Source: Bispira polyomma (taxonomy: Eukaryota). Taken from it: a stretch of DNA of 64,000 nucleotides. Under the pieces are notes generated by a model that was not told the DNA's origin, ran no database searches, and saw nothing but the letters and a program-made list of their open reading frames with translations. Of the stretch, positions 1-64,000 are shown one piece after another (position 1 is the first letter of the stretch; each line of letters begins with the position of its first letter). The position numbers were made by a program, and so were the translations under genes. The DNA lies in assembly GCA_965649765.1 (NCBI GenBank), contig OZ287748.1, positions 59,210,001 to 59,274,000 of the forward strand, given 5' to 3'.

Positions 1-3000
1 GCTGTAGCAGGATGATGATAAAGAGGATATGCCTTCAAATCAGGACAGACACCTGTAAAATATACCAATTACTTTTTCCTTTACTAAAACATGTTCATTT
101 AAAATAGGTTAGATAGAGATATGTCATTGTTGTACACCTTTAGTTAAACTGGTTAGTTAGCACAGACAGCGAGTTTTGCAATTTGGGGCTTATTCTTCAA
201 TTTCTCTCTACTTTATTCTGAATAATTTCCCTACATTTTACATTCTAATCCATAATTTCCACATTCAATTTGGTTGCAACTTTGTCATAACGTTCGCATG
301 TAAAGTTATCAAATATATAATAATTTATCCTGAGGAGTTTTTCCAATCTCTTAAAGTTATTCTATTTTTTTTTCAATATTTTTATTTGCAATACAGTCCT
401 GCCATTACAAAAATTGGTGGTACACACACCCTGGCAGAGAGGTGAACCAGTGGGGTCATAAACATATTAATTACAGTAACATTTTGATTACGATACCATA
501 CATTTACACCTAATATATTACAGTGACTGTAGCACTTTTAGGATAATTATATACACTAAATACACTAATATTATATACTGATCATACAACTGAAGGTTAG
601 TTATGTGCCAGATGAAAGGTTATATAATTAAACTTTTAAATGTATGCCAGTTTCTTTTAAATGTTTCCTCATTAAAATTCAATTTGGCCAATAGTTTTTG
701 TTGTTCATATAAAATTTTAATTTTTTTCTGTAATTCAGACATTTTGAAGGCCATTGATTTCCTTGATTTGGTATATAAGAAATTTTTTGTAGCAATTAGA
801 ATCGTATTGATTGGAAGGAAGTTACTGTCTGTGAAAAGATATCCTAAAATAATTTTCTGGGAATTCAGTTTCAAATTGTAACCTGTTTCGCTGAAGATCC
901 AGATTTGTATATTTTGCCACAATTCTTGAGAATACGGACAGAGAAAAAAAAGGTGTGTTAAAGATTCGTTTGATGCATTGCAAACCATACAGTTTGGAGA
1001 GTCTGTTTTTGCCATTTTATAAAGAAGTTTTTGGGTACCAAGTATAGGGTGTAAAATTCTGTACTGAAACCATTTTAGATAGTTGTCCCCAATAGTTTTG
1101 AAGCAGATCTTAAAAACATACTGCCAGGTACAATTATCAATATTTATTTCTAGCTCTTTGTTCCATTTATTTTTTAAACCCATGTCTAAATATATATTAT
1201 TTGAAATAATATAAAAACCTTTCGCTCCAAACTTCATATGTAATAAACTATACAAATAGTTCGGAATGCATGGCTGATAAAAGAGAAGTGCGTTATCTTT
1301 CTTAAATTTTCTGATAAAAGTGTTTATTTCAGTTTTTAGTCTGATGTAGTCTAGAAAATTTGTAATTTTCATGGAAAACTTACTCTCAATTTCTCTTTGG
1401 CAGAAAAATGATTCATTTTGATCAATAAGATCTCTAACAAATACTACCCCATGTTTGTACCAGTTGGGAAAAAATAATGTAGTCTTAGAAATCTTGTTGT
1501 TATACCATATTGGTGAAGATAAAATATCATTGTTGTCTTTGATAGTAATACACTCACAATATTTTGCCCAACTGTCCAATACTTCTTTCCATAATGAATT
1601 GCAAATATTGCTAGAGATATTTTTATACCAAGTAGGTCCAAACTTAAATAGCATAGAAGTGTCACATATGGTGTTTTCGAAAAGTTCCAGCCAAGCCGTT
1701 GATTCACCTTTAAAAATTCGACTGATCCAGGTCAATTTTATTGCCTGAATGTGACAGTCTAAATTTAACATTCTAAGACCACCATCTTTGTAATCCTGTA
1801 CAATATATTGACGCTTAACTTTGTCAGGTTTATTATTCCAAAGATAAGAGAAGAGTATTGTTTTAATCTGCTTCAAAAAGGTTGTACCTGACGATGGAAG
1901 AGTCATAAAAAGGTGATTGAACTGTGACAAGATAAAGGTTTTAATAATTGTAATCTTGCCTAGTGGAGTTAAGTCTCGTTTCTTCCAAGCATTTATCAGT
2001 TTACTAGCTTTTTCTAGAGCACTAGAATAATTTAAGTGTGGAATTTCTTCTAAAATGACAGAAAATAGAATTCCCAGTAAATTAATGTTCAGTACCCCAT
2101 TCTAATTTGGAAGTTATGGCTAACTTGTCTTTTGAATACTTTTTCCTTCCAATTCAAATTACTTTTGTTTTACTGGTATTCATCTTAAGCCCTGAGTAGG
2201 TTCCATAAGTTTCAATTGCGTTCAAAGCAGCCTGCAAAGAGCTTTGTGAACCGTCAAGAATAAGAGTGGTATCGTCAAGTGTATTATTTTAAGTTTAAGT
2301 TATCGTCATCTAAATTACTATTGCTTTTTTAAGGTACAGTAATCTTGATTACATGTATTGTTATCTATTTTAGTAACCTCAAGTCTTATTGTTTTACTTT
2401 AGTTATGGCAACCTGACTGTAACCTTAGTTTCACTTAATTTAAGGTAATCTTAATTGATTGTATATCTTAAAGTTTCTTAATTGTATATGCTGTTTCAAT
2501 TATATGCTATTATTATACTAGTGCAATTAACATGGAGTATTAATAAATTTATTTTTACATCGTGGCTTTAAAAGACATTGCCTAGTGACCTGGTCAGTAT
2601 GTACTGGGGCAGACAAGTACTTCTCCTGGAGAGGATGATGTTATTAAATGTGTAAAGTGCGAGTTTATAACAGTAGAGAGGTTTGCATAATGTTTTACCT
2701 GTCCAGACACACATAAAGGATAGACCAACATACTGGTTTGCCAGTCCACTATTGATAAGGTTCAAAATGCTTAAAGGTAAGTTGATGTAAGTTTAGGGTA
2801 AGTTAAAGGTAAGTTAATTGAAGTTAATGCAATTTGAATTGAATACAGTAAAAGATTCATTCTGAGGTTTTATTTGACAGGTTCATATGTATGTACAGGT
2901 TGACATTAAGAGAAGTTAAAGTTGAATTTGTTAACATTTTCAGCCTCATACAGGCTACAGATAACAATAAAGGGGTTACAATTACCCGAAAAAAAGCATA

Positions 3001-6000: not shown

Positions 6001-8418
6001 TAACTTGTGTCTGGAGAAAGCCTTTCCTCAAGGGAATTTTTCACATTGGGTCTTTTCAATCTTACTTAAGACAACTATTGCATGTACCCACAGTCTTGGC
6101 ATCTGCTTTACCAGTATAATCAATCTTTTTAGAACACTTTAAGATGGTAGGAAACCCTTCAAATGTTCTAAAAAAGAAGCTTTCCAATTACATCTACAGG
6201 TATACAATTTGTTCTGGTATAAGTAATTCTACAACTTTGTAGAGACAACCTTATACAGCGGTCTGCTACAACTCTACACAGTTTTTTCTAGATGGTTCAT
6301 AAACATCTCATTAGGTGTATTATGGAATTTATCATCATGTTTACATTTGACCAGATATATGTTAGTACGTTCAAATATCCTGTCAGATTTCCTGTAGAGA
6401 AGAGGAAGTGATTTTCTCAAATGGTCGCTTCATCCTCAAGTATATTCGACACTGTTTGCAATATGGGGCACCTATCTCAGATATTTTCTAACATATCTAT
6501 AGATTTGTTTTGTAGTTGGTAATTTCACTGATCTCAAACCACAAGGGATGACACTACATGCATTGTATCTATTATGGGAGGAATTTGTCGGCTATGTTTT
6601 CTGTCCGACAGCCAATTTTTCTCAATTTATACAAATAGCAACTTGCGATTGTATCATGATAATAATATCTCCAGATTGATCAGGGATGTCTTGGTTTTGG
6701 GAACCATTAATCATTCATCTCTTAAACCACTTTCCAGTCAGTTTCCACTGTGGAATATCTTTTGTATCAAGTTTTGCAAGCAGCAATCTGAGCTATCTGA
6801 ATCTGCTTGCTGTTTTTTGTCATTCAAGATCAGTCTACATTCTCTGCTAAGGTGCAAGTCGAATTAAGGCGTCTTGAAGATCATCCGTAGGAAAGGTCTG
6901 CGAATCAAGGTAGACCATATTTAGGACTGGGCCACAGGGAATTAGGTGGACATCTCAGATTCCTCTATATCACAAATTTCAGAGTTTTTAACCGTCTATT
7001 TGTGTTCATACTCTTAAAGCTCAATACTATTGCTGTTACAGAACACATATTATTGAGGGATTTCTTTCTATAGGGTAGGAAGTGTCAAAAAGCTCTGAAC
7101 TTAAGATGTTTTTCCATAAAGATAAACAAAGGTCCAACATAGCCATAGCCTGTGTGAGACTTGTTCTTTCTCTTCTTGGCTTTATCTTCTATTCTTCTTG
7201 GTGGTGGCATTATGTGTGTACAGTGTATGTAACTACAATCATAACTAATGCCTATTGAGGCAGGACACTTATTCCTTTGAAATATAACTGTTTAAGTTTT
7301 TTATAGGAATTTTTTACAGTGTTATATATGGGTTATGCACATGGAGATAACACACTTATTCACTTATTATGAGATATAGCTGTTTAAGTATATTCTAGGA
7401 ATAGTTCAGTGTTTTTTATTTGTATATATCTGTAAATCAGGACATTATCTAAACCTTGACTTACATTCGCAATGCAATTTTGGGTGATGGAGAAGATATT
7501 TCCCTCTAGATCCTTCAAGGCTGTATTCAGCAATTGTTAGGAATTGATAGGACCATTTTACGCAATAAAATTGGAAATTTTATTGGTAATTGGAATTTTT
7601 GTTAGTAAAATTCCGATCAATTCCTAACAAATCGTACTTCCCGACCCACCACCCTGCATCAACATCTTCTCAGGGGAAGTGACTACAATTTTGTAATGAA
7701 GACAATGGGTGTAAGTCCACTTGGTGCGCAGTTGCGTAACCTGTGACCTGTATAATGGTGTGTGCTAAAGCGGGTTGGCTAAGGTAGTGTCGGGATTTTC
7801 GTTTCGACCGAGCCGACTCCTGGCGGAGTCAGTTATAGCAATTGTTAGGAATTGATAGGATAGGAATTTTACTGACAAAAATTCTAACTACCAATAAAAT
7901 TTCCAAATCAGTAATATAAATAGGCCTTACGACTCAATAGAAAAACACTGATATTCATGAAAAGGCCACTATCAGATACCGGCAGACGTCTGCTAAACCA
8001 TCAGAATTTATTGGTCATGGAGCGAAAAAATTGGCAGGTTGACCCTATTTTTCAACAAAAATTGAGAAATAATTGAAAACCACAAACCACAAAGTAACTA
8101 TGGGTACCCTTATTTAACTGCAAATATATAAGCCGTTTCTCAACGGATGTAAAACATGTTATGTCACAATGTATTTAAACAAATATTTAAACAGAATATA
8201 TTATGGGTTGTGGGCTGCACAATATCAGGTGCATACGATCATGTGTGGCTTTCTACTCTCATTAAAAAAATTCAACATTACTCTTAAATTATAAAGAAAT
8301 CCTACTATATGGCTCATATGTCTACCACCATATCTATTTAATAAACATACATGTATATACCTTGTGAATATTTCAAGCAAAACACCATACAAACAGTCAG
8401 TGCCACAAGAAAAGACAT
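1..8418 (-). CDS. 5' part of receptor paralogue 'copy 0' (exon 1 8361-8418 signal peptide; exon 2 starts at 52 and runs off the window)
   Basis: Exon 1 reads MSFLVALTVCMVFCLKYSQ-G|GT (58 nt, same length and phase as exon 1 of genes A and B). After a TTTACAG acceptor at 53-59, exon 2 reads (G)VCPDLKAYPLYHHPAT, nearly identical to the start of exon 2 of A (20620) and B (31865). The ~8.3 kb intron is filled with TEs. Confidence 0.75.
364..2277 (-). mobile_element. Tx1/L1-clade LINE, 5'-truncated ORF2 3' end (RT C-terminus and zinc-binding domain)
   Basis: ORF 620-1930 has the typical L1/Tx1 ORF2 tail (GGLRMLNL, WFQYRILHPILGT, CxxC...ESLTHLFFLC). Frameshifted upstream continuation DDTTLILDGS...SGLKMNTSKTKV to ~2277; AATAAA plus A-rich tail at ~364-390. 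Confidence 0.9.
2278..7520. other. Unclassified, heavily degenerate inserted sequence (probable old TE)
   Basis: Begins abruptly where the LINE RT breaks off. It has an AT-rich TTAAC/GTTAA-rich end and an internal region with only short broken ORFs and no motif I can assign. Boundaries approximate. Confidence 0.3.
7530..7910. mobile_element. MITE-like inverted-repeat fragments
   Basis: ATTGTTAGGAATTGATAGGA...TCCGATCAATTCCTAACAAAT palindromic unit at 7533-7632; its right half recurs inverted at 7842-7908. Confidence 0.5.
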
Positions 8419-10517: not shown

Positions 10518-11141
10518 CCTGGTCACACCTACACTTTCTAGAGCTATGTTTGTGTCACGTGTGAATTTAGGAAACGGTTTAAAACGTAGTAGGAAGTGAG
10601 AATCCCATCTGTGATCATTTCTTTACATTTTGCAACGTTTTGTGACGGATAAAATCGTTCCCAAAACGTCTCCGTTTCATCTTTTTCGTGTAGTGCTTCA
10701 AACTGTTTGAAACGCTACAGAAACAGCTCCCGTTTCTCCCCGTTTCTCTGTTCATCCCCGAACGTTTCCGAAAGTAGCATAGACGTATCAGTAAGTAGAT
10801 ATACGTAGTAGTAGGGGGCGAGGAAGTCCCAGTAAGTAGTGAGATCGTCTCCGTTAGTCAAGAAAGTTTCACTAAGTAGCAGAAGGCAGTAGAACACAGC
10901 CGTAAGTAGCAGTACATTACTTCTATGTAGTAGTAGGTAGTGATATCCTACCAGTAAAGGGTTCGTTTTTTTGCCCCCTCTTCGTGTGTACAAGTACCAA
11001 CATCGTCCTGAAACGTCACAAAACGTCACAATCGACTACCCCTTTATGGAAATGACTTCACTTTGATACAATACTACCACGTTTTCAGTCTATATTGCTT
11101 AGGTACGTTGGGGTACGTTAGCACGTGTAGGTGTGACCAGG
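10518..11141. mobile_element. Non-autonomous TIR element (PIF/Harbinger-like MITE)
   Basis: 17-bp TIR CCTGGTCACACCTACAC ... GTGTAGGTGTGACCAGG; a second copy lies in opposite orientation at 21284-21972. Confidence 0.75.
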
Positions 11142-11989: not shown

Positions 11990-12510
11990 GGTTTTATCCA
12001 GTAGGGTTTTTTTCTGGCAAAGTTTGTCTAGTAAGGGTTTTATACTGTAGGGGTTGAGGGTTTCACCCAGTACAAGTGTTCATCGAGAAGGGACTTTATC
12101 AAGTAGAAGTTTTATCCACTAAGAATTTTATCCAGTAGGGGTTTCATCTAGTGTAGTTTTTATCCAGTGGGGGTTCTTCTAGTAGAGGTTTTATCCAGTA
12201 AGGGTTTATCGAGTAGGGGGTTTATCTGGTGAGGTTTATCCAGTAGGGTTCATCTAGTAAGAGTTTTATTAAGTAGGGGTTATGTCTATTAGTAGGGGGT
12301 TAATCTAGTGTGGTTTAATCCGGTGTGGTTTTCATACAGTGAGACTTTTATCTACTAGGCTTTTATCCAGTAGTTTCAGTTTGTGGTTTTATCTACTATG
12401 GGTTTCATCCAGTGGGGGTTTCATCTAGTAAAGGTTTATCCAATGTTTGATCTAGTAAAGGTTTCTCCAATGTTTGATGCAGTGCAAGCTTTGTCCATAA
12501 GAGGTTTTGT
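11990..12510. repeat. Degenerate ~20-bp tandem repeat (TTTTATCCAGTAGGGG-like)
   Basis: Many diverged copies of a tttatc(c/t)agtagggg motif; no unique spacers. Confidence 0.8.
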
Positions 12511-12559
12511 CCTATCGTCAATTTGTTCACCCATGAGTTCTTACCTCTAAAATCGGACA

Positions 12560-12634
12560 AATTGGTTATGGTTAACTTAACCACAATTGGTTATGGTTAA
12601 CTTAACTACAATTGGTTATGGTTAACTTAACCAT
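12560..12634. repeat. 25-bp tandem repeat x3 with palindromic core
   Basis: ATTGGTTATGGTTAACTTAAC(C/T)ACA units at 12561, 12586, 12611. Confidence 0.85.
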
Positions 12635-13287
12635 AGCCAGGGTACTAGACTAATTTCGTGAGCACATGGCTTCGTTTCAGATCTACAACTTTCGATCATT
12701 AGCACTTTAAGTCTGAGCACATGCACAAGTTTTAGTGCTAGAAAAGACAAATAGAATGGTATATTCAGTTTAAAATGTCTGCTTTGGGATGAAAGTTCAA
12801 TTTTCATGAGATGGTAAACTATAACTAGATTTTTTAGAAAACTGCTTGTCCTAATACTTCAGATACGGCAAAACTATCAATAACTCATCAAGTGAATTTA
12901 TACCATTACACTATTCATAGTCATCAATATTATTTTAAACTAATCAACATACACAATAATTCTGCTACAAGTTAGTTTTTATTCCATTCAAGCTAGTGTA
13001 GATAGTACTATTTTTTCTATTACAAAACACTGTACAAGTGAAAAAGTTTATGAGAACTACCTTTCTAACTGTTTATATGTATAATATTAATATCTCAACA
13101 AACAGCGACTCTATTGCATCTATATTACATATATCTGTTACATTAAATTATAAAGACACTATACTATAATGTGGTCCAGTTTATTGATTTTCATTTGCTG
13201 CTAGTTTAAAACTAATAACTTAATGTTGCATTTTCCACATCAGGTGTCATACTTCCATTCTCATATATGGTATTTTCTTGGACAGTT

Positions 13288-13780
13288 TCAACCCACGGTT
13301 GTATTCTTAGTGATTTGTGCCACCTGTAATGTTGCATATTCAGTTTTACAAGGACTCAATGACTTCTCAACAAACTCTAATACAGCGTACTCATTTTTAC
13401 TAGGACCCGGTGACTTCTCTTGATTCATGTATATTGCAGATGTATTTTGAACATTGCGACTGCCTCCCTCATTGTAATAAATATCCGATATAGCTTGTTT
13501 ATCTGGCCTTGTATCTCGTTGTTTGTTCATAGTTATATCAGGACATGTAAAATCTCGATCCATTTGTCTATTTCTGCCATTTCCACTTTCTTGGGTTACT
13601 TCTGATGTTTCATAGATTCCTGTTTCTTCAGATTTGTCAACTATTACTCCATTGTTACTGGCTTCTATTGTACTATCTGTTTGCTGTGACATGTTAAGGT
13701 GAGGCATATTTTCATAATTATGTTCTAAAAAGGAATGACCTGGAGCATTTGTGCCATCCTTTCCAGCTGCTTTTTTCTTC
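13288..13780 (-). CDS. Gene A terminal exon: cytoplasmic tail with multiple Tyr motifs
   Basis: RKKKAAGK...HNYENM...GIYETS...IYYNE...AIYMNQ...NEYAVL...TEYATL...VG*; includes ORF 13288-13707. Confidence 0.85.
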
Positions 13781-27545: not shown

Positions 27546-27724
27546 AGTTGTGGTCCCTGTAGGTGCTACTTCACCACACTTTACTTGTAATGTGCCTACC
27601 TCGTGTTCTACAACTATAATACAGAAAGAAAAAAGGTTTACATATTGTTTAACTACCTGTGTGTAACAAGTGCTTATATGGGATATTCTTATTGCACTTA
27701 TATATTCTGGACAATATATATATA

Positions 27725-29318: not shown

Positions 29319-29423
29319 TATATATATATAAATATGTTTCAGTGTATACACGTACTTAAATATTTATGTGAAGCATTATTTTAGCTTCTACTAAAATGAT
29401 ATATCGTATTGTAATATACTTAC

Positions 29424-30215
29424 CACCGACTGGTAATATAAAGTGTACTGCTGCATTGATATTATTTTCATCATTGGTGAACTGTAGATTGAAGCTTTCT
29501 TCATCCATACCAGTATTAATGTGAATCCTTTGTAAGTTACTGATTATACCAGGTAATATATGATACTCAGTATCGCCTTTAATGGCTTTTATTATAATTT
29601 TAGAATTTCTATCAGCAGTTTCACTTTCAAACAATGTTCCTGGCCCTCCGATATACAACTTACTGGTCCAGGTAATAATACATGTACGGTTAAACATTGA
29701 CATCTTATTTCCTGGTTCATCGTAAACACCTGTGCTCCAGTTTTGAAACAATCCACTATGGCTTTCAATATACACCACGTCTGTCGTTTGTACAGTTGCA
29801 TCATTTTGCATTGAAATCACTTCAAACGTATAAGCAGTCTTACACATATAAGTCACATGGAAGATATGTGGATAATTATTGATAGATTCTTCTGAAAGCT
29901 TTAGATATATTCCATCAGAATCATCATTGTTTCTGCTTATTTCCCATCTTATTAAAGATTTACTGTTGTAGATTTTGTCAAAATCAAATGTGAATTCGCC
30001 AAACATTAAATCCGGTCTTTGGCGTATTGCCAATACATGTGAAGTATTCAGAGTTGCCAGGTATTCTGTAGAATTGTATGTACAGTTGTTGATGTAGTAC
30101 ATAGAATCCTGTAGAACTAGCTCAATAACACTAAGTCTTTTTATTTGATTAGAGTATTTACACATTGGTTGATGGTCTGACAAATAGGTTTTACAGAGAA
30201 GTCTTGACTTCAAAC
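29424..30215 (-). CDS. Gene B large ectodomain exon (264 codons, still open)
   Basis: Within ORF 29356-30303; TTTCAG acceptor and GTAAGT donor; aligns end to end with A 16604-17401. Confidence 0.75.
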
Positions 30216-45700: not shown

Positions 45701-45747
<47 letters not shown>

Positions 45748-48700: not shown

Positions 48701-51581
48701 TCCCCCACCCCAGTTTACACACACACATACTGCACACTTGTCCTCTTCCACACATAATTCTTTGTGTGTGAAAGAAGGTGTGCAGTGTGTGTGAAGACAA
48801 GGAAAGGCTAGAAAGTATAATATGTGACTATATATGTCAAACTCATGTCAGCGCAACCTAGATTTTTACGAATTTTTAAAACAGTTATTATAGTTTTTTA
48901 TTAAGAAAACGAATCGACTGCATTATCCCCAGAATTAAAAAAAAATACCTGGTAAGTATGGAGTTAAATTTTCAGGCCAATTTTACGAAAATGCTGTCAC
49001 AACACCAAATCTGCACAATCCCATCAATGAGTGAGACTAGCCTTGCTAGACTCACTCATTAAAAATGTAATTCATTCAAAACAATATACACGTTTTTTAA
49101 AGTTGTGTAGTTAATATAATATCTTTATTTATGCTTGATCAATACTCGTATTGTGTGACAATGGAAGGGGCTGTCTGCGAGAATTGTTTACAAAATATGA
49201 CGTTCCACCATAGATTTCAAACTGTGTGACGTCACAATACAAGTATCGTTATATGGCTGTTTAATCACTTTGGAAAGAAATATTAAAGTTTTAAATGGTA
49301 TTTGCATATAAAAATGGTTAAAACGGTCACAAAAGACATATTTTAAGGCTGCCGTAATAGCAACTTATGGTTAAACCATTTTCGTAACTGAGGTATAATT
49401 TACTGGCTTTGCATTTGTGTGTTTACGTTACTAAAGCCTTAAGTAAAAGTATTTCTCCTGGTCCTTTGAGATTCAACTTAATGGGATTCAATTGTATATG
49501 ATCAAATAAGATTTTACTATTTATGGCAATAAGACATGTTACCATTTATTTTAATAGAGCTTAAGTGAGGCACTCAAATATTGTAGATTTTTTTAACTTT
49601 TTTCATACACAAACATACACCAGGACACATTTTGAGATCATTGTGAGTTTAAGACATTTGATAAATATTACAAGCTCCGGTTTCTCTGTGCATGTGTGCA
49701 CTGCCATCAAATAACTAAATAATTCCCACTCAGACTAAAGTATAGACAAATACCTATGATCTAAACCTCATGGGATTGTCTGAAATGCATTATTTTTAAT
49801 ATGATTTCAAATTTGATAAGTCATTCAAAAGAGATAAGACCTCTTTATGTGGTCTATGATTATGGTTCCAGAGTCATCAGCAAAAGTTTTCAGATCTGAG
49901 AATGTTGAATTCAAACACATAGACTATTCCAGAGTGATATATGTCTTGGTGTTTTTTTTTCTCTAGTATCTAGCCTACACAGATGTGGCCTCAGGCAAGA
50001 TATTCTCAGTTAATGCTCACATATCATGTTTATTGAATCTAGTAGTGTTGTACCAAATCAGGCCCATCGTTTAAAAACAATTAAGTTCCAGTAAAACATA
50101 TACTAATGAGAACATCTCTGACTAACATTACTATTTTAGCAAGAATATTGTGGTTTTGAAAACGAAATATCACATGAAATAGGAAATATATTGAAAACTT
50201 AATAGTAACTTAGTAAAGAAGCCTTAACTTTTTGTGGCCATGGTAACTGCTGCAGTACCACTACTTTCGGTAAAAGTTCATCATAATATTTATGATAACT
50301 ACGGAAAATCAACTTTCACTGACATGCTACTTACTTCCTGACTGTATTTTGTATTTAAACTAGCTACTGGTTCAACTGCTGCACAGACAGGGGATAAGAA
50401 AATGAGCAAAGGTAACAAATACTGGTCAAAATGAACATTACTGACATGACATTCTACTTTAATGTACAAAAGAACCCCATTTATCCCACCTCCATTAGGA
50501 TTACCTAAAAAAGAACTGATGTGCCCGAATTTAAAGAACAAGTTTCTCACGACTATCAGCTCTGAACAAAACCCATGTCTCTCAAAATTTGTAAAATATG
50601 TCTCTATCATCAATGTATCAAAATTTGATTCAATGTTAATCTAGTAAATCTACTATAATTTTCCGTTCACAAACCATTCTGACTTGACCTTATTCTATAA
50701 ATTTATTAATTTGTCTCTATTAGTAACGGAATACAGTGGAACCCTGTTAAGTCGAATCTGAAGGGACCATAAAAATGTTTTCTAAAAACACAAATTCTAC
50801 TCAACAGGTAAATTTCAATTAAAATATAGCAACAGGGCCATTATAGAACTTCTACTCAATAGGTAATTCCACTTATCAGAGTTTTACATATAAGGGTTTG
50901 ACTGTATTTAATTGTAGTCCTCTTCACAGTATTTAGCCAAACAGCCATATATTGTCATGCAGACATGATGCAGTGGAATTAAACATCATCATTTATGGCA
51001 ATGCAAAATATAGTTTGTATAAAATACCAATTAGCAAATAGAAGAGGCTTTTAAGTGGAGCACAAAAACATAAATTTGGACAAATGGAAACAAGTTCATA
51101 AGATTGAATATTCTTAAAGTTTTGCTAACTCAGGTTTCATCAGAATCAATAGTGAACTACATTTTATCACATCCCTTTAAGTATGACTCGAGTTAAGGCA
51201 ATTTTCTATTTATTTTAAGAAATATTGTACCCCCAATAACTTCAAGGTCTTTTATTTGAGGATCTACCCGGTTTAGTGGAACTCCTGCTTAAGAAGGAGT
51301 ATTTCTCCTGGTCTCTTGAGGTCCCACTTAAAAGGGTTTACCTTTACTTCTGTTTTGTAGCTTTAAACATTGGTCTGATAGCTAGAAGGGTTGCCTTTTT
51401 GGTCTAATATTGAGGTTCTACTTCAAGTGGTTTACCTATACACACATGTATATATTGTTTTGTAGATTTGATCATTAGTGTGATAGCTGGCGGTATTGCC
51501 TTCCTAGTGTCTCGTTCAGTAGTGATTATAATAATAGCAGTCAGAAGAAAAAGAAAAGCGTTAAGAACTTGTTCTTTATAA
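35171..51581 (+). CDS. Gene C: type I membrane protein with two CUB-like repeats, stalk, TM containing Arg, short tail (exon 5 frameshifted)
   Basis: Exons 35171-35240 (MCVADLMYVIVIVVSGQHLASIH), 35916-36112, 36971-37148, 41922-42002, 44152-44298 (deletion/frameshift), 45323-45488, 45883-46068, 50364-50411, 51466-51581 (DLIISVIAGGIAFLVSRSVVIIIIAVRRKRKALRTCSL*). All AG/GT; exons 5-7 repeat exons 2-4; AATAAA at 51587. Confidence 0.7.
36196..36372. mobile_element. Tc1/pogo-like MITE (degenerate)
   Basis: TA-TAGTCTAACCC ... GTTCAACTA-TA ends; shares internal sequence with copies at ~46146-46260/49443-49495 and ~51270-51340. Confidence 0.45.
37656..38099. mobile_element. PIF/Harbinger-like MITE, young copy
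   Basis: Perfect 35-bp TIR GTGAGCGTTTCCATGCAGGCAACTTTCTGAGGCGA with TAA target duplication on both sides. Confidence 0.85.
39102..40490 (-). mobile_element. L2/CR1-group LINE ORF2 fragment (reverse transcriptase)
   Basis: ORF 39284-39829: NYRPVS, QSAYR, LLDLSAAFDTIDH, GVPQGSVLGPILF, FYADDTQLY; frameshifted upstream part in ORF 40049-40459. Confidence 0.92.
41020..41390 (+). mobile_element. Possible Penelope-like element remnant with degenerate hammerhead motif
   Basis: CTGATGA-GCCTCTTCAGT-GAAAC-AGT-GTC at 41360-41388, preceded by a C/A-rich tract and a weak W...TIPN..N end of a GIY-YIG-like ORF. Confidence 0.3.
42011..43808 (+). mobile_element. Tx1/L1-clade LINE, 5'-truncated and degenerate
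   Basis: GLNLNKVKTEA, FKTLGMWFS, QTLQYKILHKVYNCN...CDWC...HYFYYC; A-tail; TSD AAGTAAGTTA at 42001-42010 and 43809-43818. Confidence 0.85.
45703..45744. repeat. (AT)n microsatellite
   Basis: Perfect AT run. Confidence 0.95.
46264..49438. mobile_element. Kolobok-like non-autonomous TIR element with nested insertions
   Basis: 21-bp TIR GGCTTTAGTAACGTAAACACA ... TGTGTTTACGTTACTAAAGCC; TTAA on the right, TTTA on the left; splits a Tc1-like MITE. Confidence 0.65.
46800..47615 (-). mobile_element. L2/CR1-group LINE 3' fragment
   Basis: ORFs 47276-47596 (VRNLGVLFDSDFSF...ALVGSRLDYCNSL) and 46957-47376 (LHWLPV...APTLWNSLP...LKSYLF); (TAA)n tail at ~46800. Confidence 0.9.
50734..50904. mobile_element. 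Tc1/pogo (Tigger-like) MITE
   Basis: TA-CAGTGGAACCC ... GGGTTTGACTG-TA. Confidence 0.7.
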
Positions 51582-53516
51582 AGATCAATAAATGACTTTT
51601 TGGAAACATTCTAATTTGAGAGAACACCTGCAAGTACCTGTCATAAGCACTTTATAATCTGGGGTAGCATCATTCTAATCTTTTCCTTAATAAAATTATG
51701 TTTTGGTCATTAATGTAGCACTTGGTAGATCAAGTAGATGTTGAAGTTTATGTTTAGTTCAACTTCAAATTTCAGGCTTCTTGAGGCACAGAGAATTTTC
51801 TATACAATTGCAATGATTGTCATTATAGGGCTTTGGTGTTTGGTGATTTTATACACTAAAAGTATATATCATATTTTGTTAAAAAGGTATATTTACACAA
51901 GCAATCAGTATAGTAAATCTGTAATGCAGATTATAAGAAAATATTCTAGAATATTCATTCTAATCTTATCTTTTATATGTAACTAATCTGCAATTACACA
52001 TGCTGTAATTATACTCTTTTATTGAATGTATATCTTTTACGTAAGCTTAACTTAAATTAAGGTTACCTTAGTAAAGTTAGTAACCTTAACTTAAATTGCA
52101 TGTAAAATCTAGAAACTTTAACTCACCTTAACTTAAGGTCACCTTAGTTAAGATTGCTCCAATGGTGACCTTAACTCTCACATATTGAAGTAGAAACTTA
52201 GTCTGGTCACCTTAGTTAGTTTACGATGACCATAGACTGTATATAAAAGTAGTCACTCTAAAAAAAACTAGTAAATGTAATACCTTTACTAACTGTAAAT
52301 AAACTGTAAATAACATTTTTATCCCTCAAACTGTCCTATATCTTGAGGGTACCTTTACTTATCTTTCTGGACTTGCCACTGAGTTGGGTACTGTGTACCT
52401 TGACATAGTTGGTGTCAAGGATGTCAGTACATGGCCTCACCCACTTTTGTTCTTTAGTTGCTCTCTTGAACTGTTAACCTCTTCTCTAATTGGCCCCCAC
52501 AGTTGGGTGCCAAAATTGATCAATTTCTTCATTTTTGCATTTGACATTCAGCAATGCGCATCGAATTTTCCGCCGTCCCATCCCATTTTCTATCGAAAGG
52601 ATCAGATCATATTTTACTCTTAGAGCACAACAAATTAAACTTATTATCACTTATCATCTTCCTTTAAGTTACCATACAGAGTACCCCAGGGGCTTACGGT
52701 GGGGGCCTGACTGGACGGAATCCAGTATATACATGCTCGACTTTTGTCTGGGAATATAATATTACTTGGTCAAAAAGTCTTTTACCCCAGTCTTGTAAAA
52801 GTAAACTTGATGTAAAACATCAGCACTAATTTATTTTTCTGTTCCTCCTATTTCCTAATTTTCAAATATTAAAACAATACATTTTAAATACAACTCCATA
52901 TTTTATTGTTCAAGTAAGAGGATTTGTGTAGAGTAAGAAAGTAAATACTGTAAAGTCTAATTCATATAGATACTTAAATACTTCATAGTACTACATATAA
53001 CCTCTTTTATGGTGCAGTATCGCTTTCTTTTCACATGAATTCTGGCCAAACAAACATTACACGAATTTGACTGTAGTAAAAACAAATGCTTGATTTGTAA
53101 ACTTTTGTTACTACACCCAAGGAGATTATGTTTTTTACCTGTGCCCGTTTGTATGGACACAAAAACTATTGAATTAAATTACATGGAATGAAGTGGAAGA
53201 CTATGTTAAACTTATAGAAGTAACAATAAGTAATGCTACTAAAAATATCCATCTTGTATTGTAAAACTGAAAGTTGTGTAACTAACAATGGTTATCAATC
53301 CACCTATTTCAGATTGTCTAGAGGTATCCGACAAGGCTGTCCCATCAGTGCAGTTTTATTTTTGTTGATAACAGAAGTTACTTCGATTATTCTTTGTGAG
53401 TCTAACTCTGTTAATGGATTAATATTTTCAGAAACGCACATTAAACCGTGTCAATTGGCAGATGACATGACAATGTTTTTAACTGATATGTCCTCTGTTA
53501 AAAGTATCCTTACTCT

Positions 53517-53958
53517 TGTTACATATAAGGACATTGTGGTATGTTAAAGTAGAACCGGTCTAGTTAGTACTAATGTTTCTTACACTCTGCTAGAGTGATC
53601 GATTTATAGATTTGGGGAACCCCTAAGCTTCTAAAAGCTGGTTCTATTTTGTTTCTGTTGTTATTGAAGTTGTTTTAATCTGTTTACATTTCATTCTGGA
53701 ACCTTCTATCAATTGTTTACATATTCTGGAGCCTTCTCTAGCAGTAGTATACATAAGGGTTGAAAGCCTGGCCACAGACTAGTGTTTATTGAGTTGGTAG
53801 GCTATATGAACTGCTATACTGTGAAACACTTTTTTTCTTTTCCTGTGGATATAAACTGATTATTATATACATTTTGTTGTGAACTCATTGGAGTGAACTG
53901 GATATAAAGTTGTGGATCTACCAGAGATTTGATTTGCTGCATATTGGTGACCGTAACA
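53517..53958. mobile_element. Solo LTR (442 bp)
   Basis: TGTTAC...GTAACA ends and 5-bp TSD ACTCT (53512-53516, 53959-53963); removing it restores the LINE frame SVKSILTLFKEFYRY. Confidence 0.85.
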
Positions 53959-54929
53959 ACTCTGTTTAAAGAATTTTACCGATATGCTGGCCTAAAACTG
54001 AATAAAAGCAAGACTGAAGCAATTATTATTGAGTATGACGGTACCTTAATAGAAGATCCCAGTTTGGGCATAAGGTGGATAAATGGTCATTTCAAAACAT
54101 TAGGTACATGGTTCTCTGTTAACCATGAAGAAATAAGGATCTTGAATATAAATAATAAAATGGAAATAATCAAATCTGTTCTTAATGTTTGGAAAACTAG
54201 GTGCCTAACACTCAAAGTAAATAACTGTACTTAAATCTTTATTCATTTCACATATATTACAGCTTGCTTCAGTCTTGCCTTTTACTAACAAACAGTTGAT
54301 AAACCTAGACAGTCTGTTATTTGATTTTGTGTGGAATAATAAGAATTCACTTGTATCTAAAAATACTTTAATTTAGACTGTAAGTAACGGTGGGCTTAAA
54401 ATGTTTTTTTTATGTATGTAGTAAAAACTGCAAAAATTATGTGGATGAAAAGATTTGTTAATAATATTAATACCAAGTGGAAAGTTCTACCTGAAAATCT
54501 AATGGGTCTTAAAAAATCTATGATTTTTAGAAAGTACTATTTTGAAACCATTAAACATAAACCATTTACTACCTTTTACAGAAATATGTTATCCATTTGG
54601 TATGATTTTATTACAGTGGCACCCCAAACTATGGATGACTTTTATAATAAAAATATATTTTACAATGATTTATTTTGAATTGATAACAAGGCTATAGCCC
54701 ATGAATATACTGACTGGGCAAATAGTGACATATTGGTTGTTTCTGATATTCTACAAGTTGATGGTCCTTTTGTAAAAAAAAACAGATTTGGCTAAGGTTT
54801 AGTTAAATTTATAAGGGAAATACATTAGGTTTGAGTTGACCTCAACTTGAACATAAGTGAATTTAAATTGATACATTAAGTACATATAAAAATAGCCTCA
54901 AACCCAACGGTGGAAGTAGAGCATTTACT

Positions 54930-55721
54930 TATTCATCCAATAAACGTTGGAAGGTAGAACCCACTTTATCAGTACCATTTGAACTTGCTTGGATGTAAGT
55001 CCAAACACAGTCAGACGTCCAGGTGCCATGCTCTTTTATATGCTGTACCGGGACTTTTTTTAAGAGCCACATACGGGCAGATGGAAGTGGAGCTTAACCT
55101 AGGTAATGTGATTACCTGTACTTTGTCCCTGTTTTGCATGGTCTTAGACTATTTGAATAACAATTTGACTGAATCTTTCTAAAAAAATACACCCGCCCCT
55201 GTAAAGTGAAGCGATGAATCAAACTCAGCTACTGATTGTGGGGCAATATTAGAAAGTCTATAAAACAATTTAAATCCCGTCAAGAAGATTGCTTTGCAAG
55301 TGTGAAGATTGCTAATATGTTTGCAATGGAGGATCATTTGTTTCAATTTATCCACATCTATTATGTTTCTTCTCACCACTGTGTGTGTTCTATTAATTTT
55401 TATTGCTTTAATAAAATACTTGATTTTTAGATGATCAAGCATCTGAAATGGCAAATCATATACCACACACATAGCTTTAATTGCAGATACATAATTTGCA
55501 ATCATTGACACTTTATTGATCACTAAATACTCCAGAAAAGAGATAACACAGTCAACACTTACAGCCTCTAGGGCGACTCCCACACACAAACAAAATGCCA
55601 CAAATGTTTTGAAAAACATTTCATAACACTTCCTGATCTTAGGTCGGAAGGCAGTGTTAAGTCTCCTGTAGGCTTGACCCTTTAAACTTTTCAGTGCTTC
55701 TATCTCTACAACACAAAGCAT
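54930..55721 (-). pseudogene. Tyrosine recombinase ORF of the Ngaro-like element
   Basis: ORF 55179-55721 (IANYVSAIK...FYRLSNIAP) and downstream KEHGTWTSDCVWTYIQ catalytic end; the segment with the HxxR motif is deleted. Confidence 0.8.
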
Positions 55722-55878
55722 AGTATCCTACATTTAATATCTGTAACAAGGCCTATAGTGTGTTATCAATATAGGTTAATTCAATTGAGGTTTGCAACCA
55801 AACTGGACTGCTCACCAATGATGCCAACTCATTTACATTATGTACAGAATTGGTCCATCTGGACAGCAAGTCTGCAGT

Positions 55879-57473
55879 TCAGTTGTTTTTACCTAATACA
55901 TGAATATTCCCCATGGCTGCCATATACCAGACATTTCTGGCACACGCTGAAAGAAAAGGATCTTTGGCTCCACCTGAAGAAAGTACACATACTACAGCCT
56001 CATTGTTGCATTTGATTATGACTTTTGCACCACACCAATATTGCTGGTACAATTTCAATGCTACTATGATGTTCACCATTTCTAGATGCACAATGCTTAA
56101 ATTTTGAAAATTCATTGGAATTGCTAAATGAAACACCAAATTTCTCCATACTCCACCCAAGCAGACCAAACACGCATCAAATTCTAAGGTGTGGTCAATG
56201 ACCTTGTGGTCATACATGGATATACCATTGTACATTGGAAGAAACCGGTCAAACCATTTCAAATCTCTGTTGAACTCATCAGTAAGAATTATCGTGTTAG
56301 GATTTATCACGCTTCTCAGTAGTTCTAACATTCTATTCAAGAAAAACCTAGCAGGTTAAACACATTTGTGTATATACAACAAAGAACCTACCAAAGATTG
56401 CAATTGTTTTTTGGTACACTGTTTTCTATTGCGCCATTCTGCTACAGTTACTCTTATCTCTTGTAGTTTTTCTTCAGACATGGAAGTTGTACCCTGCACT
56501 GTGTCAATAAGTACCCCCAGACACACTGTTTGTGTGCTGGGAGCAGCTAGCTTTTTCTGGCTAATAGTGAGACCTAGGGTTTCCATTATTTCATAAAGAC
56601 AGTCAAACAACTTTTTGGCGACATCTTGCGTCCCATAACCAAAAAAAATTGTCACAATGATTTACGACACTGTAGCCACACTGACGCATGACATAACTAA
56701 CTGTGTCACGTATGCGTTAACAAAACTGGCTACCATAACGACTCCCAAATGGCAGACACATATCTATGTATGAACCTTGCCAGTTTAGACCCAAGAGGTC
56801 GTATTCAGCCAGATCTATTTTTAGTATCCGGAATGCACGACTTACGTCCAACTTTTAGATGTGAGCTCCTTTACCAATCTTGGCTATCTCACGAGTTAAA
56901 TCATCCAGCGTTGGAAAACTGAGATTAAAGTCCGAACCCAGATAACAGTCTTTGTCAACCCCTGAAATAACTTCTTGTCCTTTCGGTCAACTAAGGTCTA
57001 TTATGACGCGCTGTATCGAGTCATAAAGGGGGAGTAATGACAGTTTATAATCGGGCTTACAACGAATGGATCTATTATGGCTCCTTGCTTTTTCTCTTCA
57101 TTTAAGTACACCTCCACATCATTGGGGTATTCAATGGCCGACATATGATTGTCTGTGTTTGAACTAAGTGGGCAGTTTCTGTTGAACCCCAAGGTAAATC
57201 AAAATTTCAACAAATGCATCAATTGCTTGTCCCAGTAATCAGTAAGTACAGCACGCCAATGTGTAATTGAGACTTGACCAGTATGCGGGCAGCCATGAAA
57301 TTGGGCTGTCCCCCCTTTTTAACCTCATTGTGTAAAGCTATGGGACAGTTGATTGTTGAATTTTTTACACCTACTATTGTGGGTAGTGCAGGTTCAGAAA
57401 GTGGAAGAAAACCAAATTGGAATACAGACTGGGCTCTGCACTGTCTGAAACTATCACAATCCCAAATACACAA
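55879..57473 (-). pseudogene. RT/RNase H ORF of the Ngaro-like element
   Basis: Fragments NHMSAIEYPNDV...HYSPFMTR, LGLTISQKKL...CLGVLIDT...LQSLVGSL, FDACL...IVHLEMVNI...IKCNNEAVV. Confidence 0.85.
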
Positions 57474-58107
57474 GGTGTGATTTTTTTCTTCTGTTGTGAA
57501 ACAATATCGAATTAATGAACTTCTTTTCTTTGAAAATCCCCAGTCCTATTTAGTAGCTGGGGTCAATTCTTTTTTAATTGTCACATTGTCAATTATCTGT
57601 GAAGTGGCCTTGAGGCCTCTATTCTTGTCAAGTTTTGGAACTGGTACACCCTTTTGTGGGGGAAAATTAATTGGTCTGATTTCATTTACAGTCTTTTCAT
57701 GCAATTTTCTGCCACTCTGTATGACCAGAACATTGGTGTGCTGTTTTTTGTTTACATTATTGTGCACTCTGCTAACCTTACCATGTGTATTTCTGACCAC
57801 CCTAGCATATGACTTCCTGTCAATAGTATTTGTAGCTCCAAAAGTACCCAAGACACTTCCCAAAGGCCGTATAAACAAATTTTCAACATCTACTTTTCTG
57901 ACAGAACTATTATAAAAACATTTGGTGACACATTTATTTCTGCGTACTCTGGTTTTTTGTTCAATATCTAGACATTTCTGTCTTACACAGACATCATTTT
58001 TCACATACATATTTACAACATTGACATTATCTACAACAGATGATACCTTTTCACTCATTTTTTTGGCTGAGCTTTCTTTGCAAACAGACATTCCTTTTTA
58101 GGATGCC

Positions 58108-59176
58108 CTAATATACACCCTCTGGCAATACAGTGTGAGCATATGTGCCTATGAAGCTTGCCACCAATTTCATGGTCTTTGGTGAACTGACAAGTACCAT
58201 TCTGGTAAAATTTACAAAACCAAGGTTTCTTACCATTATCAGTTGAATGATTGCCATTGAAATAACCCTTTCCCTAATTTTTTGTACTACTATTGTTAAT
58301 GTGTGTGTGTTTCTGAGCTTGAGCTCTGCGTAGAATACGATCAGTATCATTCCAAGTAAGCGACCCCCTCTCCATTTCACACAGGAGAACAGCATGTGCT
58401 GCTTTTGCCCCTTGCCAATTAAAGTCGGCGGCATCCTCCATAAGCTTAGACATGTACATAATCATCTTTTCTCTTTTAACATTATCACTTTGCTCAACTA
58501 CATTTTTACAAAAACCTTGGACTCATTGGGACATTGAAAGCTGATCGTATGACAATCTGGTTCTTGTGGCCCCCCTATATAGCCTCTTGAGGCCACGCTA
58601 CCTTGTTTTTGACTAGAACATCCACAGAACACCCCCCTTTAGATTTAATTTTGAAATTTTCAGTACCTGATTTTTGTCACTCACGTTCCAATTCTCTTAG
58701 CCTGATGTCTACTCAACGCTGAAAAGAATCTGACTTTCTGAGAGCTGACAAACTGGGGTGTGGTTCATCATCTGATGAATCACTGTCTGATACACTAATA
58801 TTTTTACTTTTATCAATACATTGACCATCATATTTTTGAGATGAAACCAATGTACTTAACTTCTGTCTCTTTCCTTTGTGTTGATCTCTCTGACGCTTGT
58901 CTAAGTCAGCCACCCTGTCCTCGACCGCATCCAGCCTGGAATTGATCCGCTGTAGCTGTTGGAGAATCTGCAGCTGCACACTGTCCTCTTCTCTTCCTGA
59001 TGATCTGCTGCTACCACGTCCATCATCCCGTTATTAACAACTCTAGTGTCCGACACATTCAGGGTTTCTTCGGTAACATCAAAATCGTCCTCAATGTTTT
59101 TTCTCCTACAATTTTTCCCGGTTGGTGGGATATGTTTCCCCCCACATTTATTGCACTGGTATGTATGCTTTGACAT
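58108..59176 (-). pseudogene. gag-like ORF1 of the Ngaro-like element
   Basis: N-terminal CxxC...H..PTGKNC motif, YMSKLMEDAADFNWQGAKAAHAVLLCEMERG core, C-terminal CKFYQNGTC...H zinc finger; frameshifted. Confidence 0.75.
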
Positions 59177-61072
59177 ATTTATATTTGTTTATATTTGTTT
59201 ATATTGGCTATTTGCCTATTGTCACAGAAAGAATACAAAAACGAGACACACGCAGTTTTCCGTTTTGACCACTCCACAGCTTGATTTATAATTTTGAAAT
59301 TAAAAATATATGGCATTTATTGCAAGAATGAATAGGTCTAGACCGTCCCTTTATCCCCAGCCAAAAAAAGCCCAAATCAAGCGTGAGGTTCTTTAAATGG
59401 AGGTCTGTGTGTGATCTCATACATACAGAAACAGAAGTTCTTTTATTCAGCACAGTGTGCTTGTCCATAAAACAACTAAAACACTAACATAATCCTATAA
59501 TGTTCCTTCATATGACAAAACTCTCACAAATAGAATTAGTTGTAAATATAAAAAACAAGTGTAAATATAAATTAAAAAGAACATTTCCTGCCACACTCGT
59601 CTGTGACTATTTTAACACTGAAGTTCACACCTATACTCCCAAGTAACCAGGTTTTGTCTTCTTTGACCAAACTTTTTACCTGTTAAATTCAGACTGGTAC
59701 CCTCAAGACAATTAAGGTAGGAAGGACTGACAAGGGCAATGCCTAAACACCGCCCCCGATTAAATCACTTCAATCCAAAATATTACTACATTGTTAATTA
59801 TATACTGCTCATTGGAAAAGATTACATTAAACAATGTGAAAAGAATGGGTCAAAAGTTTCCTTTTATGCTTTTCCGCATATAGTTAAAGATAAATTGAAG
59901 ATAGAGGAACTAGTTTTTCTTAAAAAATGTAAGAGTGATATTTTTGAAAATCATTTTGGTGAGTTAATGTTAGCCATACAGTAATTCTGGTCTGGATGTT
60001 ATAATGTTATACATACCATATTGTTTTTGTGCTCAAGATTTCAGTATTATGTACAAAAAAAAATAATAAAAATTTCAAAAAAAGTGGAAGGGTGTGGAAT
60101 GGGCCCAAAGAAAAATATCCTTGTCCGTCAGTTTCCGTTTAATTTAACAATTCTATTTTCTCTAATTTGTAATAAAACAGTGGAAGGTAATACCATTATA
60201 CAACTTGGACATATCGACCAGTGACATCAAAGTCTCAAAAGAATCCCTGCATCCTCAGCCAAGGTCAGGCTAATGATTGCACCATGAAACCATATCTAAA
60301 CAACAGGGGGTCAATGTTCTATATATGCTAAAATGGCCTTACTTTCACTTCAAAATGATCTGGACAAACCAATGACAAACAGTAAAGTTCTTTTTGCTAT
60401 GTTCGTATTTCACATTATTATGGCTGTTATAAAAATACAATAAAATGTATTTCGATTGAAATTCTGGTTTTGATTCTCCGATTGATTTCTGTGAAATATT
60501 ACCCTGGCTAAATACATGTGTAGTCATGTTAAAATACCTACTTCTTTTACTACACTGTACAGCGACTGATTGTATATAATAAAATATTCACCAATGATGG
60601 GATTATGTACAACAAGTTGGTAGCTGTAGCTGGCTGGTTAGAATTTATGGGATGCTGTCTGTAAGCAGAATGGCTCACTATGGTATGATCATTTAATGCA
60701 AGTATGAACTTCCATTTTAACAAGACAAAAATCCACTGAAAAACTCGTTTTCAATTATTCGACCTGATTAAAATAGTGGATTTGTTGGTTCTATAATGTT
60801 AGAGATGTATATGACACTGGCAAATTTAAAATCTAGGCAGAAAAAACTTATAATGAAAATATACTAATATACTAATAATACACCTCAAGCTAGTTAAGAA
60901 CATAGGGTTTTATTATGGTGCTGGCAAAACAAAACAAAAATTCAGATTAAAATTCTACTAGATGGCCTTAAAAATATTTAATTCCAACAGGCAAAATCAA
61001 AATTTTAATCTCACCTAGGCAGATTTTAAATCCGCCAAGGCAAGATGAGAATTTTGATTTTGCCTAGGCAAG

Positions 61073-61690: not shown

Positions 61691-61969
61691 TTTAAAACTA
61701 AAATAAAGTCAAATTATATCTAGTCAAATATGAAAAAACATGGATATTATAGAACTGTATGAACTGTGGCAGTGTAACTAACGTTCACAACAATCTTCGC
61801 TTCAATACTAAAGTAGTCAACCAGTTCACTGAAGTGCATTGCCCTATACCTATATACTGTAAACACAAAAATCTACTGCTACTAGATATTATGCTAGTGT
61901 CTATAAGCACACTGATTCTTAAAAAAACATATCAAAATATATTTTGTGAGAGTTGTTTCCTGGGAAGTG

Positions 61970-64000
61970 TTAACTATTATAGACACTGTTTTCCACCATT
62001 TCAGCAATACTTCCTCTTAATTGCACTTCTTGTTTTACACTGTTACTTCCAGTGTCCTGACACGCCTCAGGATATTGTACCGTATCATATACTTCCACAT
62101 CGTCCTCTTGATCATTCTCATTCCTCTCAGAGCTGACAACATCTCTATCCTGGATCATGCTGGATTCTTCATACATGTCATTATCTATCAATGTATCTTG
62201 TACACTATCACAAACATTGCTGTCATAGACCTCATTCTCTACCAAATCCCGGTTGTTGGAAACACCGTAGTTATAAACATCATTTTCAATGAGGCCTTCA
62301 AGATTACTACTCGCAGACATAGTTACTGCTGTTTTTTGGAGACCATCTGAATGAAGCTGTGTATACACATTGCCTTCAGAAGGCACTGGGTTATCACCTA
62401 GATGGATTGTGGTAGCAGTATATGAAGTTTCAGATTTGGAATTATAGCCTTTCTTGCTTATTTCTCTCCTGAAAATAGATGCCTTACATTTTAGTAACAA
62501 TATAAGAAAAATACCAAATACAGTAGTCAACAATTAAAAAAAAAACATGCATTCAATATGTAAACAAAGATTTATTTGATACACAGACTAAACAGGATTG
62601 TGCATTATTGAAATACCTTTTCGTGATGACCATGCACACACCCACAGAAGTTGCTGCAACTATCAACACAACAGCACCAGCTGTAACTCCAATTATGATA
62701 CCTGTGCAAATATAGTACATGAGTACATATGGTGGTAATGACTGCAAACTCATATGGTAAGTAAGTGTTTGGTTTTAGCTGTTACAGTTTTTCCACTTTG
62801 AAAAATTGTGCTGCGAATGCACATTTAATTTATACTATATTACTGTTATTTCCTGTAGATCCAAAGAATATATAGGAAGTTTAAGAAAAAATGTACTTGC
62901 CCATTTGTTTGTTTTGTCCTTTGTTATTGTCAGTTTGAGGATCACCTTTTCCAGTCATGTGGATGGTTGTCAATGGTTGTGTTGGCTGTGGTATGATGGA
63001 GACTGGGTATTGTGGGCAGCCAGTCAGAGCAATCCCACATTGTATCGCCATAGAACCACCACCCACGGCTGTATAAATGTTTCACATAAAGTATACATAT
63101 TTATTTTACATCAATTATAACTCATTTATAATTATTTACAGATTTGTAGACACAACAAACTTGGCAGAAAATACTGGGGAATTAGTAGCACAAAGGGAAA
63201 TATCATTTGAAAATTTCTTAAATGAGAGGCAAATTTAATATGTTTACAATAAATGAGATGTTACAACTTGATAAATAATTTTTCAGAATTAAACCAAAAT
63301 TTTAGGTGAAGCATCAACATAATCAACCTACTCTTAGAGAGAACACTGTATGACATATTGTATAAAGTCTATAGACGGCGCTTATATTGTACATTTGCTA
63401 AAAGTTTACAATTTACAAAATCAGACATAATCTTACATTTGAAAGAGACGATGAGAGCGCCCTCTTCTCCTTTATACTGCAGTGTATACTCATCACTCTG
63501 TCCCTGTAGTATTCCTTCAATGTTATCACCAGGGATATATACCACAAGGAGTTTGCTTTGTGTACTTATTGTAAAATATATGCCCTCGCCTGTCAAAATA
63601 TTTCTGATGATACCATACTTAACTGTTGTCCCTATTGGAACTTTGAGCTTGCAGCAAAACTCAGCTTCCGATTTAATGCCCATTAAAGTCTCCATGAATT
63701 TTTCTTTAGAATCATAAAAATGTGTTGTATAACTCTGCAAGCTGCTGGTAAGAATAAAATAGTTTGTTTTTAGAGTTACATTTTGCCCAAAGGAAAGCAC
63801 ATGTTGAAAACACTCATGCCTGATGAGAAAAAATCTCTGTACATGATTGCCTTTCTCGCAATAATTGATGACTTCCTTGTTAGGGTTTCTATGCGTCCAA
63901 ATATTGGAATCGTTTTGATGATAATCTCTTTGCATCCTGCCAATAATATTGTCTGTCGCGTGGACAACATCACCCCTCCATGTTATCTGACATAAGATTC
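61970..64000 (-). CDS. Gene D (3' part): type I membrane protein with a long acidic tail carrying repeated NxxY motifs
   Basis: Exons >64000-63437 (open to the window edge), 62901-63068 (SVGGGSMAIQCG...stalk; GC donor), 62617-62701 (GIIIGVTAGAVVLIVAATSVGVCMVITKR), 61970-62468 (tail ending MVENSVYNS*). Phases are consistent (1,1,2) and the same as in gene A. Confidence 0.85.

Follow-up and report, generated by a model that had tools for sequence, protein, structure and literature searches.

Is the tandem run of single-pass receptor genes in a 64,000-nucleotide stretch of the Bispira polyomma genome an invertebrate counterpart of vertebrate paired receptors such as KIR, LILR, Siglec and SIRP, or a receptor array of another kind? 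The stretch (contig OZ287748.1, positions 59,210,001 to 59,274,000, or G000:C1:59210001-59274000; hereafter the window) belongs to an assembly of 1.035 Gb in 75 contigs. A preliminary description, made from the letters of the window, had listed five spliceable genes (copy 0, A, B, C and D) and proposed a paired organisation, in which C would be the activating arm. We find that the receptor array is real and undescribed, and that it is not a paired-receptor cluster on the argument from C. The flanks were examined for 100 kb on either side, and coordinates outside the window continue its numbering (below 1 or above 64000). Spliced models were assembled by local frame checks, database searches and folds were run on single exons, and for the trees broken copies were joined with X at each break.

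A nine-gene array of single-pass receptors

The large exon of the family was found in nine genes, all on the minus strand, between −51 kb and +102 kb (m4, m3, m2, 0, A, B, D, E and F). The array spans about 150 kb and runs well past the window edges, the window being its middle. The five genes listed earlier all exist; the family nevertheless numbers nine, not five, and C is not in it. A genome search returned one extra, frameshifted copy of the large exon on contig C7. The general plan is a signal peptide, an optional FN2 module, a CBM14-type module, a domain without a Pfam match, a stalk, an uncharged transmembrane (TM) segment and a tyrosine-rich tail. The TM is without charge in all nine family genes of the genome and in those TM segments seen in a second species. 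D and m2 are distant members (hhalign gives 92.7%, E 4e-7, for homology of D to A). The proposed succession of ectodomain, Ser/Thr stalk, TM and tail fits A, B and D, although the D stalk holds only 15% Ser/Thr and C has no homology to these genes. Pseudogenisation was rightly suspected, since lesions disrupt B, E and the C7 copy. The C7 copy (G000:C7:23.741-23.749 Mb) is a dispersed gene of A type, with FN2 exon a duplicated, the frameshift in its large exon and stops in its tail.

In the second species, ENA contig ERZ22147071 ctg31190l contains five genes, all oriented alike, over a stretch exceeding 400 kb, and a sixth is on ctg30077l. They share at most 47% identity with the array genes of Bispira polyomma and have the CBM14 module, the stalk, the TM and the same tail. 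Since the same array is found in a second species, it must be old and common to at least two species; and because 0, A and D have identical exon phases and the array itself is repeated in the second species, the gene structures are beyond chance. A profile search of 1.84 billion representatives gave 11 matches, nine of them credible, and no name or annotation was present among the credible matches looked up. Word-index protein searches with the A large exon found at first nothing and later unnamed proteins only, in a length window that excludes full-length kin. A literature search found no description of the family's domain combination. The earlier picture of a single-pass, non-immunoglobulin (non-Ig), diversifying family with birth-and-death evolution is thus supported, with no named family among the 1.8 billion representatives.

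Gene A has eight GT-AG exons and encodes 730 residues. From its 5′ end on the minus strand these are the signal-peptide exon (22331-22388), FN2 exon a (20454-20620; Pfam fn2 E 4e-6), FN2 exon b (19293-19374), a degenerate CBM14-type chitin-binding exon (18103-18288; Pfam E 0.05, with paralogues down to 7e-8), the large exon of 265 residues (16604-17401), whose halves are SUEL-lectin-like and CUB-like by weak structural matches, a stalk exon with 45% Ser/Thr (14869-15207), an uncharged TM exon (14031-14100) and the exon for the 163-residue tail (13288-13780). The tail carries YENM, YMNQ, YAVL and TEYATL, the last resembling an immunoreceptor tyrosine-based switch motif (ITSM). A frame shift near 13290 costs A its last ~25 residues, which are present in B. 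A 57-nt candidate exon at ~22000 in A and ~32550 in B was dropped from the models, being interrupted by a stop in A and without copies elsewhere. The uncommon donor GTTTGT ends the signal exons of A (22331), D (75723) and F (101936).

Within the window copy 0 is represented by its signal-peptide exon (8361-8418, −) and the 52 bp that form the 5′ part of FN2 exon a (1-52, −); the rest lies to the left, as far as about −12600. The whole gene is open, encodes 740-776 residues depending on the stalk donor, and has the exon phases of A. A 270-bp repeat, likely a short mobile element, is present in the first intron of copy 0 (10845-11110) and in that of A (21396-21672), the two forming an inverted pair that is 70% alike, and a 3′ fragment of a long interspersed nuclear element (LINE) with zf-RVT (E 3e-8) lies inside the first intron of copy 0 (620-2101, −).

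Gene B, also on the minus strand, has three lesions. Its signal-peptide exon (32812-32869) and FN2 exon a (31696-31865) are followed by a remnant of the CBM exon with a deletion junction (30802-30931), where the loss of ~1.34 kb has removed FN2 exon b and, from the CBM exon, its 5′ part, in line with the exon loss reported earlier. The large exon (29424-30215) is open and 80% identical to that of A. The stalk exon (25908-27613) contains the variable number tandem repeat (VNTR) already noted, with 20 copies at 26085-27542, and the mixture of 72- and 73-bp units puts this exon out of frame as assembled. An uncharged TM exon (25044-25125) and a tail exon frameshifted near 24570 (24234-24793) complete the gene. 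The deletion and the tail frameshift break B whether or not the 73-bp units are real.

D is open, at about 726 residues with one GC-AG intron, and its last four exons are in or overlap the window: the large exon, a distant homologue of that of A (63437-64000, continuing to 64165), a short stalk exon with a GC donor (62901-63068), an uncharged TM exon (62617-62701) and a tail exon with 10 tyrosines, mostly in acidic NxxY repeats (61970-62468), all on the minus strand. Its signal, FN2 and two CBM14 exons lie outside the window at 70059-75780. Remains of DIRS-like (tyrosine-recombinase) retroelements were seen at 55179-59200 (−) and at 64629-69518, the latter (RVT_1 E 6e-9) within the D intron that separates the CBM and large exons. 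In E both the CBM exon and the tail exon are frameshifted, and F is open with 636 residues. In m3 (−37213 to −36143) the large exon holds an acidic insertion of ~80 residues, and RRKR is a possible furin site of this gene.

The preliminary description recognised no named family for these receptors. This stands for the family as a whole; the ectodomains are not featureless, however, as Pfam finds FN2 and CBM_14 in them. For FN2 (PF00040), A, D and m2 score above the Pfam cut-off (E 4e-6 to 9e-10). CBM14 (PF01607) is above it in D and m2 (best E 7e-8), below it in A, m3, m4 and the second copy in D, and without a match in F. The Pfam search of the family ectodomains gave fn2 and CBM_14 only, and no EMI, EGF/NIM or Ig domains were found. 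For the large exon there was no Pfam match and no PDB sequence match for SUEL/Gal_lectin or CUB. In the model of the A large exon (predicted local distance difference test, pLDDT, 70) residues 131-265 align to CUB domains (best Z 7.1, root-mean-square deviation 3.2, 103 aligned). When the N-terminal half was folded alone (pLDDT 69), its top seven matches were SUEL/rhamnose-lectin entries (latrophilin lectin domains and rhamnose-binding lectins) and two Plasmodium entries, with Z 3.8-4.6. Cys18, Cys44 and Cys124 of the large exon are almost invariant, a pattern that fits a SUEL domain that lost disulfides. An Atlas feature search for the family gave weak CUB leads only, and Foldseek against PDB and Atlas no convincing fold. 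The SUEL-like and CUB-like folds, weakly suggested by these models, may serve as leads and not as identifications.

Conflicting histories of ectodomains and tails

The long tyrosine-rich tails reported for A, B and D do hold 7-10 tyrosines each. The tail common to E, F and the second-species genes s40, s41 and s42 is made up of an NPxY near the membrane, the block YxKPxKxGIYKxP, acidic repeats of NDxY and a pair of the form YxxL-x10-YxxL, similar to an ITAM (immunoreceptor tyrosine-based activation motif). NPxY together with this pair is found in F, s40, s41 and s42, broken in E and altered in A, 0 and D. In shuffled tails the YxxL pair arises by chance in 1-2% and NPxY in 2-4%, and as the tails are related their motifs do not count as independent. 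A and B have tails without NPxY, with YMNQ as the first half of the pair and with a duplicated YAVL/TEYATL, and copy 0 has kept NPxY, with neither tyrosine of the pair left. No canonical ITIM (immunoreceptor tyrosine-based inhibitory motif) was found in 0, A, B or D; A and B have the ITSM-like TEYATL. A search of the genome for adaptors of the DAP12, FcR-gamma and DAP10 type left PF11628 and PF07213 unmatched, as it did the search controls. In the second-species gene s43 (12450-13279 of its stretch) the acidic NDxY unit is tandemly expanded in the tail.

Ectodomains group by orthologue and E/F-type tails by species. In ectodomain trees E falls with s39 and s41 and F with s42 and s43, and in tail trees the four second-species tails fall together. 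By approximately unbiased (AU) tests, F+s42+s43 (p 0.004) and E+s39+s41 (p 0.003) are rejected as clades of tails, and E+F and s39+s41+s42+s43 as clades of ectodomains. The tail DNA of E and F is 84% identical, whereas their ectodomain DNA is not alignable. Copy 0 and A are 74-82% identical in the FN2, CBM and large exons versus 21-22% in the tail, and their synonymous divergence (dS) is 0.06-0.36 in the ectodomain exons (0.17 in the large exon) versus about 1.1 in the tail. The tail DNA of copy 0 aligns with E and F and not with A. The genes are clustered, with gene conversion and birth-and-death evolution. The ratio of nonsynonymous to synonymous divergence (dN/dS) in ectodomains is about 0.44-0.59, which makes selection purifying but loose; one exon of 27 codons stands at 2.8 with a wide interval.

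Possible roles: glycan recognition, matrix adhesion or pairing

We think it probable, with some reserve, that the array is an old family of tandem genes for non-catalytic type I receptors which bind glycans or chitin, signal through tyrosines in a Draper-like manner and exchange tails between neighbours. A glycosylated stalk would carry the FN2, CBM14 and SUEL-like/CUB-like modules, which would attach to chitin or other glycans of particles, microbes or matrix, and clustering of the receptors would lead Src-type kinases to phosphorylate tyrosines in an acidic context. The F-type tail, which we take as ancestral, would offer, besides YxxP sites, NPxY to phosphotyrosine-binding (PTB) adaptors of the CED-6/GULP type and its long ITAM-like pair to a Shark/Syk kinase; this would be the engulfment layout of Draper/MEGF10 joined to another ectodomain. 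The array turns over by duplication and decay, with B, E and the C7 copy as broken products, and neighbours swap tail segments, recombining binding and signalling halves. Expression, ligand, kinases and immune role are all deduced here from the genes' sequences.

Draper and MEGF10 tails act with NPxY and an ITAM via Src kinases, Shark/Syk and CED-6/GULP (PMC8092387). Like Draper, MEGF10 and CED-1, the array proteins are single-pass and non-catalytic, with a tail bearing NPxY and an ITAM or YxxL (PMC8092387); unlike them, they have FN2-CBM14-SUEL-like-CUB-like ectodomains in place of EMI/EGF, are encoded by a tandem multigene array and show tail exchange. At most, the array would work like Draper/MEGF10, by analogy, without being a member of that family.

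Several observations weigh against this account. A search of sequencing runs found no RNA run that contains the locus, and the read evidence consists of DNA contigs (three runs). No intact ITAM-like pair is present in the window genes, A being altered, copy 0 having lost the tyrosines and D being without it, and the 10-residue spacer fits a wide definition of the ITAM and not the narrow one of 6-8. A, 0 and F have a degenerate chitin-binding module, and the structural Z-scores are within the range of common arrangements, at a model pLDDT of about 69. Positive selection was not found, the ectodomain dN/dS being about 0.5. The AU test does not reject a tail clade 0+A+B+C7 (p 0.34); this is because the A-type branch is long, and the copy 0/A exchange may have run in either direction.

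The same proteins could instead have a non-immune role in epithelial adhesion or sensing, holding cells on a matrix of chitin or collagen and using NPxY for trafficking. CBM14 and FN2 also serve as matrix-binding modules, a literature search on these domain names gave proteome papers on the shell matrix, and a dN/dS of about 0.5 and the lack of allelic variation seen at A would suit such a role. We nonetheless regard it as unlikely, if worth keeping in view, as the conserved ITAM-like pair, the repeated tail exchange and the high pseudogene rate fit recognition receptors better than structural anchors. If matrix adhesion were true, this would be an undescribed yet ordinary gene family.

A paired system without adaptors, within the family, seems distinctly unlikely. 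Here F-type tails would activate, A-type tails (YAVL and TEYATL) would recruit an SHP phosphatase, and copy 0 would be a decoy or endocytic twin of A. The hallmark of paired receptors is similar ectodomains with different tails (PMC12447643), and a paired-like signature does survive in 0 and A, with similar ectodomains on very different tails. However, A is without a canonical ITIM, and the ITAM-bearing F is ~30% identical to A extracellularly, which implies no shared ligand. A paired-like relation among 0, A and F is therefore a doubtful possibility; it overlaps with glycan recognition through Draper-like tails and does not exclude it. Rather speculatively, the array may form a non-Ig, adaptor-free invertebrate system which tunes glycan responses by recombining ectodomains with activating (NPxY and ITAM), inhibitory (ITSM-like) and decoy tails, tail conversion being independent in two species. 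The array resembles vertebrate paired receptors such as CD300A/C (PMC12447643), KIR, LILR, Siglec and SIRP in clustering, pseudogenes, gene conversion and the one pair, 0 and A, alike outside with unlike tails, and differs from them in having no Ig domain, charged TM or short-tailed member and, in 0, A, B and D, no canonical ITIM. The CD300 pattern is moreover reversed (PMC12447643), as conversion in the array clearly homogenises tails (E/F).

That the array is an allorecognition locus, as fuhc/FcoR is in Botryllus or Alr in Hydractinia, is very improbable. Clustered type I receptors with tyrosine motifs are found in FcoR (PMC12065747), but no Ig domains were found in the array, and in long contigs from two samples, which may be the assembled animal, A shows no difference from the assembly. 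The long pieces of A come from three DNA runs (two samples, one study) and are identical to the assembly; the listed read differences in A and a joint at 17429-17527 look like cross-mapping from B. Hyperpolymorphism of the allorecognition type was accordingly not seen at A in these two samples. FcoR is similar to the array as a set of invertebrate type I receptors with long tails and differing tyrosine motifs, and differs in being of Ig/sushi type, in its pairing with fester genes and in its link to a fusion phenotype (PMC12065747).

The snail Biomphalaria offers a further likeness, in that PTC1 (GRC) and PTC2 are invertebrate clusters of single-pass genes that are lineage-restricted and whose paralogues have low identity (PMC7494358). 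GRC proteins probably recognise saccharides (PMC7494358). PTC2, which we compared with the array by description, differs in being without known domains and in being defined by allelic hyperdiversity and an association with resistance (PMC7494358). The described invertebrate clusters with ITAM/ITIM-type motifs (Botryllus FcoR, Hydractinia Alr) are Ig-based and snail PTC2 is without recognisable domains; here, recognisable glycan-binding modules are joined to a conserved NPxY and ITAM-like tail, with tail exchange in two species. Genes 0, A and F provide defined combinations of ectodomain and tail for studying how chitin or glycan sensing may be coupled to Src/Syk-type signalling.

Gene C and the neighbourhood of the array

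Gene C (35171-51581) is an unrelated insert on the plus strand, opposite to the family. Its exons are at 35171-35240, 35916-36112, 36971-37148, 44152-44298, 45323-45488, 45883-46068 and 51466-51581, the last encoding the TM, and they make two related domains of two exons each, which bears out the domain duplication claimed earlier. No homology to the other family genes was found when its exons were compared with the family profile, and an Atlas feature search gave nothing for C. Exon 4 (44152-44298) shifts the frame, in a region 31 bp shorter than in a paralogue, C′; the sole open form of C skips exons 4 and 5 and encodes 248 residues. C′ lies 590 kb from C (G000:C1:58655369-58669489, +) and was compared through reference-based searches together with two short pattern queries. 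Its exons 2 and 3 are 89-90% identical to those of C and its exon 4 region is open and 31 bp longer, C′ apparently being the more intact copy; a pattern query for a restored splice donor in C′ was without match.

The short tail and basic TM residue reported for C are there as assembled, in the form of a 12-residue tail and a mid-helix Arg (CGT) in 51466-51581. The Arg is private to C, however, C′ having CTT (Leu) at this position by a short pattern query. Over the region of the TM exon the two differ by 1 bp, the protein match ends there at residue 29 of 37, and the 12-residue tail is probably specific to C. C is thus an unrelated, decayed duplicate and not a tandem copy of the family. Despite its Arg, its 12-residue tail as assembled and the in-frame 248-residue skip form, C as an activating arm that binds an adaptor through a charged TM is largely refuted by the exon 4 frameshift, the private Arg (Leu in C′, with a 1-bp difference near the tail), the opposite strand and the lack of homology, together with the uncharged TMs of the family.

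Further LINE pieces are present at 39100-40480 (about 40 near-identical genomic copies), 42000-43500, 46957-47600 and 53200-54700. The cluster is enriched in single-pass genes without known relatives. Just past gene F, a Thr-rich stalk and an uncharged TM exon lie at 107600-108420 (−); upstream of them no family ectodomain was found. A different single-pass gene is at 126300-133215 (−), with a tail frame of 177 residues; one of its exons, without a Pfam match, resembles by eye the end of a SUEL lectin domain.

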